Sequence record: NC_028999.1
Direction: 5' to 3' (one strand)
DNA: 64,000 bases
Shown: positions 287 through 62,812 of the stretch, one piece after another
Layout: every line of letters starts with the position of its first letter
Position numbering within the stretch: position 1 is the first letter of the stretch
Program-made: the position numbers and the translations under genes
Notes under the pieces: model-generated
What the model was told of the DNA's origin: nothing
Seen by the model: the letters and a program-made list of their open reading frames with translations, nothing else
Databases searched by the model: none

Positions 287-1909
287 ATGGATCCGTTTCT
301 CAACCAGAGAATCAAAGAAAGGACCCCAGAGTTCAATAAGACCCTTGCCAACGGTCTTGCGATTGAGCACATGATGGGCCTCAATGAGGCTGGGATCAAC
401 AACACCCGAGCGCTGATTGATAACCTGTTCCAGATCAACTCCGCGCTCTTTCCGGAGGGTTTTAAGTATCACGGTAACGTTGTTGTACGGGCTGAGAAAC
501 ACTTCGAAGAGATCACACGGGAATACGGTTCGCGGCGCGTTGCCAACATCGCGCCATCGAATCTGTACATGATCGCTTTGAAGACCAGCTTTAAGGGCGA
601 AGAACTCTTCGATCGCCACATGTTGATACCTTTCGTTGAACAAGGTGGTACGACTGTATTGAACGGGGCGCGTTACGGGATCGCCCCTGTTCTAACTGAT
701 GTGGGTTACTCAGTTCTGAACAACAGCATCTTCATTCCGTTCCGGCGGGCGAAGTTGACATTCAAACAGAAAGACCACCATTATTTGTGCAACGGTGATT
801 TGCAGATCATGTACGTGATCTGGTCACAGATCCACAACGAGATGTCGAAGCGAACCAAGCGAGATCTGGACAATCGCCAATACATCGAGTCGTGCCTGGC
901 ACATTACTTCTTCTGTGAATTCGGTCTGATTGAGACCTTCAAACGTTGGGGTAATGCAGATCTGCAAATCGGGTATCTCAAGGATTTCCCTGAGAGCCAA
1001 TACCCACGTGACCAATGGTGCGTCTACGAGTCAGCGTTCCTGACGGGTAAACATCCCACTGGTGACATGGTTCTGGTTATCCCACGTCATCAGGAAACTG
1101 ATTTCGTGAAACGCTTGGTAGCTGGTTTCTGGTATGTGGTCGACACGTTCCCCAGTCGGTTCTATGAGCCGAGCTATCTGGATAACAAATCGATCTGGCG
1201 TATCATCCTCGGCTTGATGATCTTTGGTGACTTTGAACACCAGGGTAAACTGGCTGAGAACATTGATAACCATCTGGATAGTTTTAACAACTCACTGGAT
1301 GAGATGACCATCGAGGAGCTTCGCTCGGTGGATGTCAATGTCAGCACTATCTGGGAACTGTTGTATGCCATCATGACGCACTTGGCACATCACCTGTATG
1401 CCACGGATATCGATGAAACCAGTATGTACAACAAGCGGTTGAGCATCCTGCGTTACGTAATGGATGAGTTCAACTATGCCGTAACCATGTTTGGTTTTAC
1501 GTTCCAAGCCAGACGTGATAAGGATTGGACTGCCCAGGAAATCAACGATGCCCTGAAACGTTCGTTCAAACTCAATACCTGTATTCGCAAACTCACCAGC
1601 GAACACGGGGAGATGGAGACGATCAGTATGCCTGGCGACAATAAGGCTATTAAGATCACCTCTATCTTGGTACCGCAAGATCGTGCTAAGACCAGCAAGG
1701 CGCACAATAAGTCTCTTATTGGCGACTCTACCAGGCTGATCCACGCATCGATTGCGGAGGTCGGCCAATATAAGAACCAACCGAAGAACAACCCGGATGG
1801 TCGTGGCCGACTCAATCTCTTCGTAGGTGTACGATACGATGGGATGATTGAACGGCGCGATGACGATCGGGAATTATTGGACGCCACCCAAAAGCGTTTC
1901 GCCCGTTAA
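287..1909 (+). CDS. Non-virion RNA polymerase beta-like N-terminal subunit (phiKZ gp123-like)
   Basis: 540 aa; PFVEQGGTTVLNGARYGIAPVL resembles the RpoB N-terminal G.F.ING.ERV region; size and position upstream of the portal block match phiKZ synteny (recall). Confidence 0.75.
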   Translation: MDPFLNQRIKERTPEFNKTLANGLAIEHMMGLNEAGINNTRALIDNLFQINSALFPEGFKYHGNVVVRAEKHFEEITREYGSRRVANIAPSNLYMIALKTSFKGEELFDRHMLIPFVEQGGTTVLNGARYGIAPVLTDVGYSVLNNSIFIPFRRAKLTFKQKDHHYLCNGDLQIMYVIWSQIHNEMSKRTKRDLDNRQYIESCLAHYFFCEFGLIETFKRWGNADLQIGYLKDFPESQYPRDQWCVYESAFLTGKHPTGDMVLVIPRHQETDFVKRLVAGFWYVVDTFPSRFYEPSYLDNKSIWRIILGLMIFGDFEHQGKLAENIDNHLDSFNNSLDEMTIEELRSVDVNVSTIWELLYAIMTHLAHHLYATDIDETSMYNKRLSILRYVMDEFNYAVTMFGFTFQARRDKDWTAQEINDALKRSFKLNTCIRKLTSEHGEMETISMPGDNKAIKITSILVPQDRAKTSKAHNKSLIGDSTRLIHASIAEVGQYKNQPKNNPDGRGRLNLFVGVRYDGMIERRDDDRELLDATQKRFAR

Positions 1910-1934
1910 CAATTAAGCAATAGGAATACACCAG

Positions 1935-2720
1935 ATGCAAAACATGAACCTTCCCCATTTCTCCCAACTCGGTCTGCCGGTACCATTTCACGGCGTCGAC
2001 CAGAATACCTTCAATGGTAATCTGCCAGCAATGAATGATAAGGTTCCTCCGGTACAACTGTCGCAGTTGATGATGCAGAATCAACAGGCAGTTTATCAAG
2101 TCATTGCGAAGTTTCGCCTCAACGCGCAGATGGCTGTAAACAAAGGCTATCTGCAAATGTTCTGCTACAACCTGTTGTCGCAGAATGGTTTTCAGAATCC
2201 GGTGTATCAACAATGGGCTCAAACTGCGGTGGACTTCTTTGAGTTCCTCGTAGTGGGTAAAGGGTATCAGCCTCAACAAGCGATTGATATGGCTGCACAA
2301 CGTGTCATGGAAGCTTTCATTGGCATGGCGTTCGCTACCTATCAACAGGGTCTGTCGCAGCTGGTGGAACCCTCCCGTATCCCCAGTCTGCAAACAGCAG
2401 TCCAAATCTATCATCAGATCACTGCGGATATCCAACGTTTCAAATCGGGTGGTGGCATGGCAATGAACATGGGGGGTGCTCCCATGGGTGGTGTCAGCAT
2501 GGGTACTCAGCTCCCCCCGATCAGCACTGTCGGCGGCACTCCGATGGGTGGTCTTAGCAATTTCGCTACCAGCAGCGCCCCTGCGTTCAGCAGTCCGCTC
2601 CACTCCATGTCCAACAACACGCCCGCCGCAACCAACACCAATAACACTGGTAGTGCCTTCTACGATGATCCTCCCCCCAGCGAAACCTCTTCAACCTGTA
2701 GAGGAATGGGGTTCTGGTAA
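1935..2720 (+). CDS. Hypothetical protein, N-terminal half of a probable frameshifted gene (Q/N/M/G-rich)
   Basis: RBS (aggaa) upstream; phage-like codon use up to ~2675, after which the tail SETSSTCRGMGFW looks out of frame. Confidence 0.6.
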   Translation: MQNMNLPHFSQLGLPVPFHGVDQNTFNGNLPAMNDKVPPVQLSQLMMQNQQAVYQVIAKFRLNAQMAVNKGYLQMFCYNLLSQNGFQNPVYQQWAQTAVDFFEFLVVGKGYQPQQAIDMAAQRVMEAFIGMAFATYQQGLSQLVEPSRIPSLQTAVQIYHQITADIQRFKSGGGMAMNMGGAPMGGVSMGTQLPPISTVGGTPMGGLSNFATSSAPAFSSPLHSMSNNTPAATNTNNTGSAFYDDPPPSETSSTCRGMGFW

Positions 2721-4026
2721 TCAAGCAGGTAACAACCAATACGGCACTTATTCGGAGCCCGCCACAATGCAAAATCAACCCCCGCAACAACCGAATGCAC
2801 CTGTGGTAGAAGAAACGAACCTCCCGATCCCAACGACTGTGAAGGAAGTTCAAATCGATCCGTCGTATTACCAGCCCGCAGGTTCCAAACCGAACTTCGA
2901 GCGTCCGTACGATCTGATCTGGAATCCGGGTGGTATCGAAATTCGTCCGGCCCATCAGACCGATTGGGAACGCACCGTGGGTGATGATACTCCGTACTCG
3001 GAGCTGCATGACCCAGCTAAGTGGTGCCTGTTCTATGTGAAGTTCCCTGATGGCGCCATCAAAGAAGCTTTCAAAGAATGGAATCCTCAGATGGAATACC
3101 TGCGTCACGAACTGAACGATGATCTGCGTCGTCAAACCTATCGTCCCTCCGGCGTGGTCTATGCGAACGATACTCCGGTATCCACCGTTGGTGGTAACCC
3201 CAACAACATGGCAGAAGTTGAGTCCATGGTAAAAGATGGTACCCTGCCGGAAACGGGCGCACGTTCTCCTCTGATCCTTGATCGGAAGCTCTATTTGGGA
3301 GCAACTGAACTGGAAGTGGAGGCCATGGTACGAGCTGATGTTCGTGAAATCCTGGAAGTGGAAGATGTTAATGCTGAACTGCCTGCTTATGAGTACACCA
3401 CTCTGAACATGCACAGCATGGATATTTCTGACGAGCTGTACAATGAACTCGTTGGTATCCTGTCTTCCACTGACATGATTGAGGTGGCTACTCGTCTGAA
3501 GGAACTGGTGCTGCGTGGTAGCCTGTCTATCCGCTACTTCCGTTTCCTGAATGAGCGCCTGACCAAGTGCATCAACGACTACATGGCTGATTCCATGTCC
3601 ATGTCTATCGATATCACTGATTTCTGCCAAGACATCGGTGAGCTGCTCGATTACATCGCCCAGAAGAAAGGTCAGCAGATGCTGAAAATTCTGAAGGATG
3701 GTGGCGCAGCCATTATCGGTAAAGCAGCTACTATGGTTGAAGTCGATGGTGATCGTGGTGTTGCTGATCAACTCGTTACTTTCCAAACGGGCTGGACTCT
3801 GGAACAACTGTCCACTCTGAACATCCTGACTGAGAAAGCGGTGCTGGTTTCTGGCGGTACTCATCCGACCGTTCTGGAAATCCTGCGTGGTATGATCAGT
3901 CGTTCTACTCAACAAGAACGTCTGCTCACCCATCGTCTGCGCATTGCTACTCTGGATGGCGTGTATCTGGAAGTGATCAAAGGTCAGCTGGCTGAACGTG
4001 CTGTTCTGCTCAAGCGCCTGAAGTAA
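2677..4026 (+). CDS. Hypothetical protein, C-terminal half of the same probable gene (+1 frame)
   Basis: Part of track ORF 2476..4026; reads as credible protein only from PAKPLQPVEEW onward; no good RBS/start nearby; ends just before a terminator. Confidence 0.65.
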   Translation, partial: PAKPLQPVEEWGSGNQAGNNQYGTYSEPATMQNQPPQQPNAPVVEETNLPIPTTVKEVQIDPSYYQPAGSKPNFERPYDLIWNPGGIEIRPAHQTDWERTVGDDTPYSELHDPAKWCLFYVKFPDGAIKEAFKEWNPQMEYLRHELNDDLRRQTYRPSGVVYANDTPVSTVGGNPNNMAEVESMVKDGTLPETGARSPLILDRKLYLGATELEVEAMVRADVREILEVEDVNAELPAYEYTTLNMHSMDISDELYNELVGILSSTDMIEVATRLKELVLRGSLSIRYFRFLNERLTKCINDYMADSMSMSIDITDFCQDIGELLDYIAQKKGQQMLKILKDGGAAIIGKAATMVEVDGDRGVADQLVTFQTGWTLEQLSTLNILTEKAVLVSGGTHPTVLEILRGMISRSTQQERLLTHRLRIATLDGVYLEVIKGQLAERAVLLKRLK

Positions 4027-4049
4027 TCCGCAATATTGCATCTGGTATT

Positions 4050-4078
4050 GCCCCACCTTCGGGTGGGGCTTCTTTTCG
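4050..4078 (+). terminator. Rho-independent terminator
   Basis: GCCCCACC-TTCG-GGTGGGGC followed by TTCTTTTC. Confidence 0.85.
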
Positions 4079-4090
4079 TCTGGGGGTTAA

Positions 4091-4600
4091 ATGAAACTGA
4101 TCAAACAGGAAGACGGTACGTTTAAGGCGATCGTCGAATGGGAAGTATTGAGACAACACATGGTGGAATCCCTGCGGTCCGATCCGTTCATTCCAGATGA
4201 ACTGAAAGACGCCATCGTGGAAAGGAATCGTCAGAAGAACTTGCTGACGATCTTCGAGAATTCCAGTTTGCGTAAACGAATTGATCTACAGTACATGCTC
4301 GCGGAGTTCAATACACCTGATCTCCAGCACTATTACAAAGCATACGAGCGAGCAGCTCGTCTGATGTACACGGATATCAATCGTGGCTGTGCCGCGGTGA
4401 CTGGTTATGAAATCATTAATAACAGTGCCCTGATGCTAGGTCCGCGTTTAGAGTTCAACCTGTCTGGGGCAGGCTTCATGGCTCGTGACATGTATCGTGT
4501 TTACGACCTGGGTGTTGAACTTAACCTTGATTTCCGCTTCATCCTCAACCAAGACTTCGATCTCTTCGACATCTATGGCGTTGACATACGCTTGGGCTAA
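4091..4600 (+). CDS. Degenerate prohead-protease paralogue 1 (predicted inactive)
   Basis: LAEFNTP and RLMYTDINRGCAAV align with FMEFKHP and RIRKIDDDRVCAHI of the protease at 61973..62812; His replaced by Ala. Confidence 0.5.
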   Translation: MKLIKQEDGTFKAIVEWEVLRQHMVESLRSDPFIPDELKDAIVERNRQKNLLTIFENSSLRKRIDLQYMLAEFNTPDLQHYYKAYERAARLMYTDINRGCAAVTGYEIINNSALMLGPRLEFNLSGAGFMARDMYRVYDLGVELNLDFRFILNQDFDLFDIYGVDIRLG

Positions 4601-4614
4601 CTAGGGTAATAACA

Positions 4615-5025
4615 ATGCTACAAACCGATTATGGAGTAAAAACGGAGTTTGTTACACTCGGTCGTTTACCCAAATGGATGCTTGATGCCGAGGGGATGGG
4701 TAAGGTAACTGATCAAATTCAAGCGGGTAAACTGCTATGTGAATTCGGCCATCCTGATATCGCAGGTTTGGATGACCATTCGATTGTTAAACGTTGCCGT
4801 GATATCAATTACAATCGCGTGTGTGCTCAGACCATCGGTATCACGCCGGTGTATGTGAATGCAACCTTGCAGGGATATAACGTCTCCGTACAGCCATGTG
4901 GTCCCATGCACTCTCTTTTGGAGACGGGGAATTATCGTCTGGGTGTTCGTGGGTTAAAACGAGAAGACGGAGAACTCGTGGAATTGATTACGTTCGACGT
5001 TTTACCGGTAAAGAATCGTAATTAA
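4615..5025 (+). CDS. Degenerate prohead-protease paralogue 2 (predicted inactive)
   Basis: LCEFGHP, RCRDINYNRVCAQT, VQPCGP and LGVRG align with EFKHP, RVCAHI, VKPYGP and CSVRS of the true protease; His to Gln, Ser to Gly. Confidence 0.65.
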   Translation: MLQTDYGVKTEFVTLGRLPKWMLDAEGMGKVTDQIQAGKLLCEFGHPDIAGLDDHSIVKRCRDINYNRVCAQTIGITPVYVNATLQGYNVSVQPCGPMHSLLETGNYRLGVRGLKREDGELVELITFDVLPVKNRN

Positions 5026-5039
5026 ACCGGTTTAAAGCC

Positions 5040-5047
5040 TACATTAC
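5040..5047 (+). promoter_or_regulatory. Possible early promoter (TACATTAC, 1 mismatch to phiKZ early TATATTAC)
   Basis: Preceded by TTTAAA, in the intergenic gap ~50 bp before the ATG at 5095. Confidence 0.3.
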
Positions 5048-5094
5048 AAATGAGATGTAGGCTAACCCAATCTAATGATCAAAAGGATATTCTA

Positions 5095-5766
5095 ATGCAA
5101 GCCATGATCAACGCTGTTCGTCGTATTCCGTTCTTCCGTTCGGTTGATAGCAATGCGATGGAACGTGAATTCTTTTCCACTATCCTCGATGACGATTATA
5201 GCGTCACTGTCATGGATAAGAAGGAGCCCATCATGAAAGAAGTATTCGCGATGGAAGATCTGCCTAGTGTAGGTGATCCCAGCCTCGTGTACAAGGTTAC
5301 CTCCACCTCGGACATGTTCCGTTGGGTTAACGGTCAATACGTCACCTACAACCCCTATCTGGATCCGAAGGAAATACATGATGAACGGGTCATGTTGATT
5401 GATCCATATGCTAACATGCCCTCGATCTCGGAAGACAAGCTCAAGGCCGGCGGCGACATGCGTTTGTCGATGATCTACAACGTGCAAGCTCTGCGTGAAG
5501 ATCTTCGCCGACTCAACGAACTGGGTGTAAACCTGGAAGTCTTGATTGATCGCAACCTGCGTCAATCTGGTTATGACACCCCGTCCACTTGGCTGATCCA
5601 GAACCATACCCTGCTCGTGCGCCAACTACGTTCCATCATGAAAGGCAAGAACAACTACGATAAGCATGTCGTAGAGGGACTGGCTTTGCAAGGCGTAGAT
5701 GTGTGGTATGACATCAAAACTCAACGTGTTGGTTTCCGTGATGGATTGTTTGTGGTAGCGGTATAA
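5095..5766 (+). CDS. Hypothetical protein
   Basis: Track ORF 5050..5766; ATG at 5095 follows AAGGA RBS. Confidence 0.7.
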   Translation: MQAMINAVRRIPFFRSVDSNAMEREFFSTILDDDYSVTVMDKKEPIMKEVFAMEDLPSVGDPSLVYKVTSTSDMFRWVNGQYVTYNPYLDPKEIHDERVMLIDPYANMPSISEDKLKAGGDMRLSMIYNVQALREDLRRLNELGVNLEVLIDRNLRQSGYDTPSTWLIQNHTLLVRQLRSIMKGKNNYDKHVVEGLALQGVDVWYDIKTQRVGFRDGLFVVAV

Positions 5767-5781
5767 GCCTAGTGATAATGA

Positions 5782-5832
5782 CGACATAGAGCCCCTCCGT
5801 AATGGAGGGGCCTTATGCCGTTATTTTTTTTT
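5782..5832. terminator. Bidirectional hairpin with CATA/TATG arms
   Basis: CGACATA-ga-GCCCCTCC-gtaat-GGAGGGGC-ct-TATGCCG then a T-run; lies between convergent genes. Confidence 0.8.
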
Positions 5833-6262
5833 ATGTTTCCGCAAACGTTAATGTAGCTGACGTTGTCGGTAGATATGCCATGGAGCGAGCTGATGGCTGT
5901 AGTGTTACAGTGTTCCCAGTGATCGGTACTTCAATATACTCATCAGGTTCCATTGGTATCCCAATGGTGTCACGCAATACACGAACAACGTCACGGTTCG
6001 TTGCGTATTGTCCACGCTTTCCCGGAATCTTAACCCCACGAAGGTCTTGCTCAATCGGACGACGATTAAAGTTGATAACTTGCGAACCAGTAAAATTCAA
6101 ACTGGTTGAAGTAGCTCGAATCGTTACCCGTGAATTACACTGCCCCTGTAACCAGATTTCAATATTATCCCACGTCACATCACTTAACGTGATGGGCGGG
6201 TTGATCCTGTTAGCTGCATTGAATTCATTGAGCAAAGCTTGACGAACATTCTTAACATGCAT
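5831..6262 (-). CDS. Virion/baseplate structural protein
   Basis: Start moved to ATG at 6262 (GAGGT RBS just after the upstream stop); shares L..IN..N and F.R..I motifs with 6271..7146 and 24583..25110. Confidence 0.6.
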   Translation of the reverse strand: MHVKNVRQALLNEFNAANRINPPITLSDVTWDNIEIWLQGQCNSRVTIRATSTSLNFTGSQVINFNRRPIEQDLRGVKIPGKRGQYATNRDVVRVLRDTIGIPMEPDEYIEVPITGNTVTLQPSARSMAYLPTTSATLTFAET

Positions 6263-6270
6263 AGCCCACC

Positions 6271-7146
6271 TCAGTCGTAATGTATCAACAATTGCCCCAC
6301 CACATCCAAACACTTGGTAGAACTAAGCTCTATAACGAGCACCATGCGTTTATCTTTGCGTGGGGTATACCGAGGTAGGGGGATGCCATGATAAACCACC
6401 TTGAAGCGTTGCTGGCCGTTTAAAACGTCATAGCACACATTGTGCGATACGGCTGATTCAGAAGTGGTCCATGGTTGTCCTGTGACTTTCTTCAAGATCG
6501 CTGCAAAGCGTTTGGTATCAGGGAAGAAATCCCCAACCTTAATGTTCTTCAAGTATTCACGATGAGGCGTGAAGTCATACCCGGTTACATAGTACGTACC
6601 AGAGATCTTAGTGCCATCGTTCCCTACTGGGAAACGGTTGGCGGTAGGAAACTCTAGTTGAGTAGAAAATGTACCTAGGTCTTTCTTCAGCGTATTCGAC
6701 AAACGAATTTTGAGAGAACCCACCCAACGTAGTGATTTAGGGTTTGCTTGAATAATGTATTCCTGCCCATATCGGTCCATCTCGAAATGCACAAGGTCAC
6801 TCACGTCGAAGACGATATCGTTCAGTTTTGCAATATCTGCCGCAAACTCTACAGTGGTGTAAGGTAGACGCTTTCCAGCGATGGTTTGTGTCCCAGACTG
6901 CCTAAAGAACGTAGCCAGATCTAAACGATCGTAGGTGTATTCAGTCAGTTCAACTTCCGGTAACATATTACCAGGACTGGTGCTACGATGGACACCAATC
7001 TTGATACGAGTCTTGGTACCGCCTAACGATTCGAACTCTTCCAACGTCGTGCTACCCGGAAACAACTGGGTTAAGCACGCCTCGTTGATCATGTCGATAA
7101 TGGCCGTCCAAGGAGAAGATTTAAGATAGTCCCTGGTGATGTACAT
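6271..7146 (-). CDS. Virion/baseplate structural protein (phiKZ gp127-like)
   Basis: 291 aa; YTYDRLDLATFF motif; synteny upstream of the portal. Confidence 0.6.
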   Translation of the reverse strand: MYITRDYLKSSPWTAIIDMINEACLTQLFPGSTTLEEFESLGGTKTRIKIGVHRSTSPGNMLPEVELTEYTYDRLDLATFFRQSGTQTIAGKRLPYTTVEFAADIAKLNDIVFDVSDLVHFEMDRYGQEYIIQANPKSLRWVGSLKIRLSNTLKKDLGTFSTQLEFPTANRFPVGNDGTKISGTYYVTGYDFTPHREYLKNIKVGDFFPDTKRFAAILKKVTGQPWTTSESAVSHNVCYDVLNGQQRFKVVYHGIPLPRYTPRKDKRMVLVIELSSTKCLDVVGQLLIHYD

Positions 7147-61922: not shown

Positions 61923-61974
61923 AACATAAAGCCCTCTCCTTCGGGAGAGGGCGATTATGCTTTCTTTTTTTTTT
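61923..61974. terminator. Bidirectional hairpin with CATA/TATG arms
   Basis: AACATA-aa-GCCCTCTCC-TTCG-GGAGAGGGC-gat-TATGC then a T-run; convergent genes. Confidence 0.85.
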
Positions 61975-62812
61975 ATCGTTTCCGCATGTAGTGCGGAATA
62001 CGAGCTGGCTGTTTGCGCGTCCAACCGAGTTGTTCGATCAGTTCGCTTACATCCATATTCGCATCAGACTCCAGACCCAGTGATTTCTGTTTCATTGCCT
62101 GATCCTGCATACCCCAGAGAGTAGCAGGTGTAATGACAACTTCAGTTTCAGCAAAGCTTTCTAGTGCTGGTGACTTATACTTGTTAGCGATGTAAATACC
62201 GCCTTCACCCACAAAGTCCCATGTAGAAATCTCACGGGTGTATTTGATGCCACGCATCATGTCATCTTGAGTAATCGAACGTACCGAACAATAGGTGTTG
62301 ATACTCGGATTATCGAGCGACTCTTTGAAGATATGGCCGAATGGACCGTAAGGCTTGACTTCACCTACGACCATTTTGACCCGACGACCTTCCTCATTGA
62401 TGGTATCAACAATGGACAGTGCACGGATGTGCGCACAGACGCGATCGTCATCGATTTTGCGGATACGTTGCAGATATTCCCGATCAGACAGTTGTCGTTT
62501 AACAACACGACCTTCAACCAGGATTTCTTCCCAGGGTTCAGGATGCTTGAACTCCATGAACAGTACGCCCTTTTTCAGACGACGCATCAGCGGGCTGTCA
62601 GGGTTGAACATGGAGACACCACTGGCTTCGTCATAAAACATACCAGCAGAGTTATGGGTACCATAGGCACCGAGAACGACTGTGTAATAACCGTCCGCAC
62701 TTGGGGCAAGAATGCCCTTCTTGTCAGTACCGGCGAGCATCGTACAACCAATGCGGACTTGGTTGGCTACGTTGTTAGCGCGCTGCGGTTGCGTTCCGAA
62801 TTGCATTTGCAA
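61973..62812 (-). CDS. Prohead (head maturation) serine protease (phiKZ gp175-like)
   Basis: EFKHP, RVCAHI (His), CSVRS (Ser), TWDFV.E motifs of the T4 gp21-type fold; C-terminal ALES/GLES self-cleavage sites; synteny. Confidence 0.85.
   Translation of the reverse strand: MQMQFGTQPQRANNVANQVRIGCTMLAGTDKKGILAPSADGYYTVVLGAYGTHNSAGMFYDEASGVSMFNPDSPLMRRLKKGVLFMEFKHPEPWEEILVEGRVVKRQLSDREYLQRIRKIDDDRVCAHIRALSIVDTINEEGRRVKMVVGEVKPYGPFGHIFKESLDNPSINTYCSVRSITQDDMMRGIKYTREISTWDFVGEGGIYIANKYKSPALESFAETEVVITPATLWGMQDQAMKQKSLGLESDANMDVSELIEQLGWTRKQPARIPHYMRKR

Follow-up and report, generated by a model that had tools for sequence, protein, structure and literature searches.

Two short homologues of the prohead-protease core in Pseudomonas phage PhiPA3 lack the serine nucleophile

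Two adjacent small genes of the jumbo phage PhiPA3, gp142 and gp143, are each annotated in its sequence record as "hypothetical protein" with no note of similarity, and their products carry motifs that recall the prohead protease encoded elsewhere in the same genome. What are these proteins, and what might a protein built like a protease do if it cannot cleave? To address these questions, we analyzed a 64,000-nucleotide stretch of the PhiPA3 genome (NC_028999.1, record positions 124001-188000; hereafter the window), whose positions 3500-6500 are 100% identical to positions 127500-130500 of the PhiPA3 sequence HQ630627.1. An initial annotation, made from the letters of the sequence, had described the two genes as a tandem pair of catalytically dead paralogues of the protease. 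Both open reading frames are present in the window with the motifs that were quoted for them (Table 1).

Table 1. Features of the gp142-gp143 locus and the prohead protease gene (window positions)
Feature	Coordinates	Strand	Description
phiKZ gp124-like gene	1935..4026	+	Upstream of the pair; frameshift near 2680-2696 in this record
Terminator-like hairpin	4050..4079	+	GCCCCACC-TTCG-GGTGGGGC, then T-rich tail TTCTTTTCGT
gp142	4091..4600	+	169 aa; 142-type short pseudo-protease; extra helical insert at about residues 17-65
gp143	4615..5025	+	136 aa; 143-type short pseudo-protease
gp144	5050..5766	+	phiKZ gp125-like gene; phrog_14839 at 9e-94; start in the record at 5095
gp205	61973..62812	-	True S80 prohead protease; annotated in the record as "virion structural protein"

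The true protease, gp205, lies about 57 kb from the pair. It matches the Pfam family Peptidase_S80 at 4e-97 and is 60-78% identical to the proteases of phiKZ, 201phi2-1, Phabio, and Pawinskivirus. When six-frame open reading frames from the whole PhiPA3 genome were scanned with HMMs, the only S80-like sequences recovered were gp205, gp143, and gp142.

The pair occupies a slot between genes that resemble gp124 and gp125 of phiKZ, with the major capsid gene 5.5 kb upstream. Between the stop codon of the gp124-like gene and the start of gp142 sits a terminator-like hairpin that was graded strong, with a stem of 8 bp (7 of them G-C pairs) and a TTCG loop. Because no terminator-like site was found in the interval between gp143 and gp144, and because the genes after gp144 are convergent on the minus strand, we take the transcription unit to be gp142-gp143-gp144 rather than the pair alone. 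Thus, the earlier proposal that the two genes form their own unit after a terminator, far from the protease gene, holds for the hairpin and for the distance but not for the extent of the unit.

Some of the surrounding gene models also appear to need revision. The gp124-like gene is read in two frames, with frame 3 matching residues 5-250 and frame 1 matching residues 239-687 of a 687-aa Pawinskivirus protein. The frameshift between them may reflect recoding, a genuine disruption of the gene, or an error in the sequence. The gp141 gene of the record (2587-4056, minus strand), which lies opposite the gp124-like gene, is probably spurious. The same is probably true of gp145 (5802-6242, plus strand), which overlaps a minus-strand open reading frame at 5831-6313 that is homologous to phiKZ gp126 (35% identity, E 2e-29). 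The homologue of this frame in 201phi2-1, gp211, is a virion protein.

The resemblance of gp142 and gp143 to the core of gp205 is beyond chance, and the homology claimed in the initial annotation is borne out by several methods. For gp143, the score against Pfam PF20034 (Peptidase_S80) is 26.2 bits, above the curated cutoff of 23.4. This protein also matches gp205 itself by BLASTP at 2e-5 and, at 3e-10, phrog_7478, whose 147-position profile bears the name "head maturation protease." No Pfam match and no BLAST match to gp205 were found for gp142, which is linked to phrog_7478 at 1e-3 and to gp143 by BLASTP at 2e-3. Its membership in the short family was tested independently with a leave-out HMM, made from 11 short paralogues with all 142-type sequences excluded, and among 903 open reading frames gp142 was recovered at E 7e-10, with noise starting at E 0.15.

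Comparisons between profiles gave the same picture. A profile of eight short paralogues aligned with a profile of six true proteases over 112 columns (hhalign 98.3%, E 1.5e-14), and the 142-type profile aligned with the protease profile at 88% and E 3e-6. An HMM of 110 short representatives, whose training set includes both sequences, scores gp143 at 2e-25 and gp142 at 8e-19. The outcome of homologue searches depended on the query. A word-indexed search with gp143 alone found only gp143, whereas a 15-sequence profile found nine proteins. Scans for the locus with single proteins returned the source phages, three SPN3US-like contigs, and nothing else, and an S80 protease profile did not reach T4 gp21 among PDB sequences.

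AlphaFold models of the two proteins have pLDDT values of 77.7 (gp143) and 89.5 (gp142), and the outcome of structural searches with them differed between predicted and solved structures. In BFVD, both models match many short uncharacterised Chimalliviridae proteins, including a match of the gp142 model to 201phi2-1 gp206 at 1e-10, and full-length prohead proteases match the two models at E values from about 1e-6 to 2e-3. Names among these matches include "Prohead core protein serine protease" and "Peptidase U9, T4 prohead protease." A Foldseek search of solved PDB structures with the gp143 model returned nothing significant, with a best E value of 0.53 and the KSHV protease at only 4.9, so the fold link rests on predicted structures. 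The models suggest that both gp142 and gp143 adopt a prohead-protease (assemblin-like) fold.

Whether such proteins could be enzymes depends on which residues are catalytic. The initial annotation had assigned the catalytic histidine to a V(S/C)(A)H motif, and this assignment proved to be incorrect. T4 gp21 has His85 in the sequence GELNHP and Ser140 in VSSRG, which we take to be its catalytic residues. In a near-identical copy of SPN3US gp245, the triad residues lie in EEDHPQ, CFSLR, and TFDWV. The catalytic triad of SPN3US gp245 itself is H77/S153/D178 (Ali et al. 2017, PMC5694885), and in a joint alignment these residues fall on H90 (EFKHP), S176 (YCSVR), and D199 (TWDF) of gp205. Based on the SPN3US and T4 mapping, the catalytic histidine is therefore that of an E-x-x-H-P motif and not the VCAH histidine (H128 of gp205).

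With the residues placed in this way, gp143 has Glu43, His46, Pro47, Gly110, Arg112, and Asp128, where His46 and Asp128 are the retained catalytic histidine and aspartate and Gly110 stands at the position of the serine. The corresponding residues of gp142 are Glu72, Thr75 (histidine position), Pro76, Asp147 (serine position), Arg149, and Asp165, the last of which is the retained catalytic aspartate. A Gly-Pro motif is present in gp143 and is Gly-Phe in gp142. Together, the Glu, Pro, Gly-Pro, Arg, and Asp positions frame the active site and substrate groove of the protease. In neither protein do the surroundings of the nucleophile position contain Ser, Thr, or Cys. Because the serine nucleophile is lost in both, gp142 and gp143 cannot work as serine proteases. 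The description of the pair as dead proteases thus survives, although partly for a different reason than originally given, since the histidine is missing from gp142 but kept in gp143.

The two proteins are also shorter than the enzyme. In the joint alignment, short forms correspond to approximately residues 33-205 of gp205 and therefore lack its first 30 residues or so. At the other end, gp142 and gp143 stop 8-11 residues past the catalytic aspartate, whereas gp205 continues for about 80 more. Because the alignment ends just past this residue, both proteins lack the C-terminal propeptide. In SPN3US gp245, auto-cleavage removes the last 64 residues, a propeptide that presumably directs the enzyme into the prohead. 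Judged by their sequences, gp142 and gp143 are homologues but not enzymes of the Peptidase S80 family, with both the auto-cleaved, prohead-targeting C-terminal region and the triad absent.

To place the pair in a wider family, we compared a profile of 12 short paralogues with 1.84 billion cluster representatives, which yielded 394 matching proteins at E<=1e-3. The best 150 of these 394, plus matches from earlier searches, were tabulated (156 proteins), and 110 of the tabulated proteins are shorter than 200 aa, corresponding to at least 110 clusters of short forms at 50% identity. The short family falls in a length class of about 115-190 aa. Four positions of the active-site frame are nearly invariant among the 110 short representatives: Glu in 106, Pro in 106, Arg in 109, and Asp in 105. 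The serine position is Gly in 59 of the 110 and Ala in 22, and is Ser in just 14; the histidine position is His in just 25. The commonest pattern at the three triad positions is H-G-D (n = 18), the pattern of gp143. The intact pattern, H-S-D, does not occur among the 15 most frequent short-form patterns listed and is thus rare at most, whereas 34 of the 46 long forms have it. From these counts, the short family is a large and old group of pseudo-proteases in which the frame of the active site is partly kept.

Loss of catalytic residues across the family is patchy. The Phabio copy keeps the serine and has Cys at the histidine position, and 201phi2-1 gp206 and SPN3US-like copies have lost both the catalytic histidine and the serine. 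A 142-type gene on a metagenomic contig (ENA ERZ18242340, 5000-5539) has Ser at the nucleophile position (LSPR) without the His and Pro of E-x-x-H-P. A FastTree phylogeny of 175 core domains was poorly resolved with respect to a single or multiple origin of the short forms. Twelve of the 46 long matches (at least 200 aa) to the short-family profile are missing the serine nucleophile, and full-length or fused pseudo-proteases may therefore exist as well.

Occupancy of the slot differs markedly among related phages. In phiKZ, only an 80-nt gap separates gp124 from gp125, and an HMM scan of six-frame open reading frames over about 97% of phiKZ found gp175 and no short paralogue. The slot of 201phi2-1 holds an unrelated gene, also numbered gp205, and then gp206, with a second paralogue, gp210, located 1.4 kb further on. 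The latter (125 aa; locus coordinates 5813-6190) matches phrog_7478 at 5e-32 and is a structural match to both models. In Phabio, Psa21, and Viktualia, small genes fill the slot (one to three per phage), including at least one that is protease-like, and Phabio has at least three structural matches. In Pawinskivirus (PS119XW and relatives) and in one metagenomic contig, a 143-type gene is followed by a 142-type gene, which is the opposite of the order in PhiPA3. Only in PhiPA3, Pawinskivirus, and this one contig was a 142-type gene with the extra helical insert found. All lineages examined have intact reading frames.

A different arrangement occurs in Salmonella phage SPAsTU (locus coordinates 408-3327), where paralogues of 161 and 148 aa flank a gene for an AAA+ "HslU domain" ATPase (phrog_4339). 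This ATPase-flanking arrangement was not seen in the Pseudomonas phages. We also considered whether the Pseudomonas and SPN3US-like loci share a common gene neighbourhood and rejected this, because the neighbouring SPAsTU gene codes for a 586-aa AAA+ ATPase and bears no relation to the gp124-like gene.

The initial annotation had named decay in relatives, with no interaction or phenotype, as an outcome that would speak against it, and decay is not what the substitution rates or the conservation of Glu, Pro, Arg, and Asp over at least 110 short clusters indicate. Within Pawinskivirus, dN/dS is 0.05-0.07 for 143-type genes and 0.07-0.09 for 142-type genes, comparable to the values of 0.01-0.11 for neighbouring genes. 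In the least saturated comparison, PS119XW versus HPP-Temi, dN and dS are 0.013 and 0.21 for the 143-type gene and 0.065 and 0.76 for the 142-type gene. Such ratios reflect purifying selection, and the genes are therefore not decaying.

These genes nevertheless differ from their flanks in divergence. When PS119XW is compared with phiHQ, BRkr, and HHBS36_1, dS reaches 1.4-2.2 for the 143-type and 142-type genes versus 0.003-0.09 for the flanking gp123-, gp124-, and gp127-like genes, and the module has therefore been exchanged by recombination. The Pawinskivirus loci form a recombination mosaic at about 4000-5760 (locus coordinates), in which the gp125-like gene has a dS of 0.75. The 143-type and 142-type genes are also the fastest-diverging genes of their block. 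Between PhiPA3 and Pawinskivirus, identity is 78% for the protease, 79% for the gp123-like protein, and 53% for the gp125-like protein, and it falls to 44% for the 143-type and about 30% for the 142-type protein. Likewise, the metagenomic lineage and Pawinskivirus share 95% identity in the gp123-like protein, 73% in the gp124-like protein, 52% in the 143-type protein, and 30% in the 142-type protein.

The initial annotation knew of no description of such a pair, but part of the family has been reported. Ali et al. (2017, Front Microbiol 8:2251, PMC5694885) listed PhiPA3 gp143 (136 aa) and 201phi2-1 gp206 as proteins with a diverged match to the prohead protease of the same phage, grouped SPN3US gp117 alongside them, and noted phages with two copies. 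They also considered that gp117 might be what is left of an ancestral protease gene after a truncating event. Furthermore, PHROG 7478 and PF20034 include the short family, and both genes of the homologous pair in the HPP-Temi record are annotated "head maturation protease." Therefore, gp143 and its relatives are already known, from the 2017 report and from public family databases. New here are the recognition of gp142 as a second paralogue and divergent member of this known family, the corrected map of catalytic residues, the evidence for selection, the mosaic and fast-evolving behaviour of the genes, and their apparent absence from phiKZ. No mention of gp142 was found in the searchable literature and no functional study of the short family in the literature, and the literature and one supplement yielded no expression, virion, or interaction data on gp142 or gp143.

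Comparison with these known proteins sharpens the description of the pair. In its length class, core alignment, truncation after the aspartate, and lack of an intact triad, gp143 is like the group containing SPN3US gp117 and 201phi2-1 gp206. It differs from gp117, for which the serine and aspartate align but no histidine does (PMC5694885), in having the reverse combination of histidine and aspartate without serine. In contrast, gp142 is not listed in that group, and the 142-type has its extra helical insert. With the S80 proteases of MEROPS and PF20034 (phiKZ gp175, SPN3US gp245, and gp205), both proteins share a homologous core and the E-x-x-H-P, G-P, x-R, and Asp motifs. Unlike these enzymes, gp142 and gp143 lack the serine nucleophile and the C-terminal propeptide or targeting region, have about half the length, are not annotated as virion proteins, and evolve far faster. 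According to record annotation only, virion labels are absent for gp142, gp143, and 201phi2-1 gp206 and present for gp205, gp268, and the neighbouring structural genes.

More distant parallels come from phage T4 and from the herpesvirus assemblin fold. The T4 protease gp21 (Peptidase_S77) carries motifs of the same type, ELNHP and VSSRG, but has no significant sequence match to the short forms. Two small T4 proteins that modulate gp21 or co-assemble with it, Inh ("minor head protein inhibitor of protease," likened by annotation) and gp68, are possible functional analogues. No literature report of either as a protease paralogue was found. We examined gp68 as a candidate paralogue of gp21 and found no sequence support for it: BLASTP against gp21 gave E 3.2, the hhalign probability was 0.1%, and there is no Pfam family in common.

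It is very probable that gp142 and gp143 belong to a functional pseudo-protease family composed of short S80-type core homologues that lack the nucleophile. The initial annotation had suggested that such proteins could poison or time the protease oligomer, shield S-x-E propeptides, or serve as decoys against host defences. Regarding their role, the explanation we favour combines such a family with a non-cleaving modulator of the protease system, and as a whole we put it forward tentatively, as quite possible. Its mechanistic part, in which the proteins act as binders or modulators, is possible if somewhat doubtful when taken by itself. In T4, gp21 forms a pentamer that blocks its own activity ahead of assembly (PMC9958956). 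As cytoplasmic, non-cleaving binders, gp142 and gp143 would tie up the protease, in assemblies that are mixed or blocked, until it enters the prohead. Alternatively, their target may be the head proteins, whose S/A/G-x-E cleavage motifs they would occupy.

Under either version, gp142 and gp143 would be dispensable, lineage-variable modulators and not core assembly factors. An accessory rather than a core role in maturation is argued by the absence of the family from phiKZ, the variable copy number, and the fast divergence. Two observations in particular count against the binder mechanism. First, PhiPA3 and Pawinskivirus share 78% identity in the protease but only 44% and about 30% in the paralogues, which is odd for partners of a conserved enzyme or motif. 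Second, phiKZ assembles its heads without a detectable paralogue.

These same features suggest another explanation, in which the genes are accessory genes for host interaction and the protease-like fold has been re-used outside head assembly, for example as a decoy or inhibitor directed against host defence or a competing phage. This would account better than the binder mechanism for how fast the genes diverge, for their exchange as cassettes, and for their absence from phiKZ. The presence and copy number of the genes vary (none in phiKZ and one to three in relatives), their order is swapped between PhiPA3 and Pawinskivirus, their dS values relative to the flanks are those of a recombining cassette, and they diverge fastest in a block where the gp123-like protein is 95% identical. 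However, the matches are to protease families only and to no known defence or anti-defence family (the PADLOC library lay outside the scope), and strong purifying selection within alleles, together with the conserved active-site frame, points to a conserved ligand. On balance, we consider a host-interaction role unlikely, if still the strongest competitor of the modulator explanation.

The proteins might instead be transient components of the prohead core or scaffold, similar to the non-essential T4 proteins gp67 and gp68, that co-assemble, are then degraded or expelled, and are absent from mature virions. Core proteins of T4 are indeed non-essential and degraded by gp21, the pair is only 5.5 kb downstream of the major capsid gene, and one SPN3US-like homologue is labelled "virion structural protein." Moreover, both models match a BFVD "Prohead core scaffold protein" (142 aa) and fused "scaffolding protein and protease" entries. 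This explanation is nonetheless improbable given that T4 gp68 resembles neither gp21 nor the short family in sequence and that the paralogues lack the C-terminal region presumed to target the protease to the prohead. Furthermore, gp143 contains no S/A/G-x-E motif on reading its sequence, and by eye the counts of this motif in gp142 and gp143 are at chance level. Finally, it is very improbable that the two genes are decaying relics, left by an ancestral or duplicated protease gene after loss of its 3' end. This explanation would fit their truncation and the uneven loss of catalytic residues among Phabio, 201phi2-1 gp206, SPN3US-like phages, and gp143, and Ali et al. (2017, PMC5694885) raised a similar idea for SPN3US gp117 in their discussion. 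It is, however, largely refuted by dN/dS values of about 0.05-0.09 and is opposed by intact frames in every lineage examined, four almost invariant positions across 110 clusters, and confident AlphaFold models.

Returning to the explanation that gp142 and gp143 are non-cleaving modulators, a more general form of it can be proposed for the whole set of at least 110 clusters. The short S80-like proteins might be a distinct class of phage pseudo-enzymes that keep the substrate-binding frame of the protease and evolve as exchangeable cassettes. They would then either time or inhibit capsid maturation in a tunable way, or act as decoys when a phage is in conflict with its host or with another phage. 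Within such a class, the 142-type and 143-type proteins might cooperate, for example as a heteromer. We regard this generalization as speculative and unlikely.

The prohead protease is the switch that commits the capsid to maturation, and for jumbo phages little is understood of how it is restrained while assembly is still under way. A conserved family of protease copies, maintained by selection, that has neither the nucleophile nor the prohead-targeting tail is a plausible missing regulator of this enzyme. Because antisense knock-down has already been used on PhiPA3, this phage is tractable, and gp142 and gp143 offer an entry point to the function of the short S80-like family.
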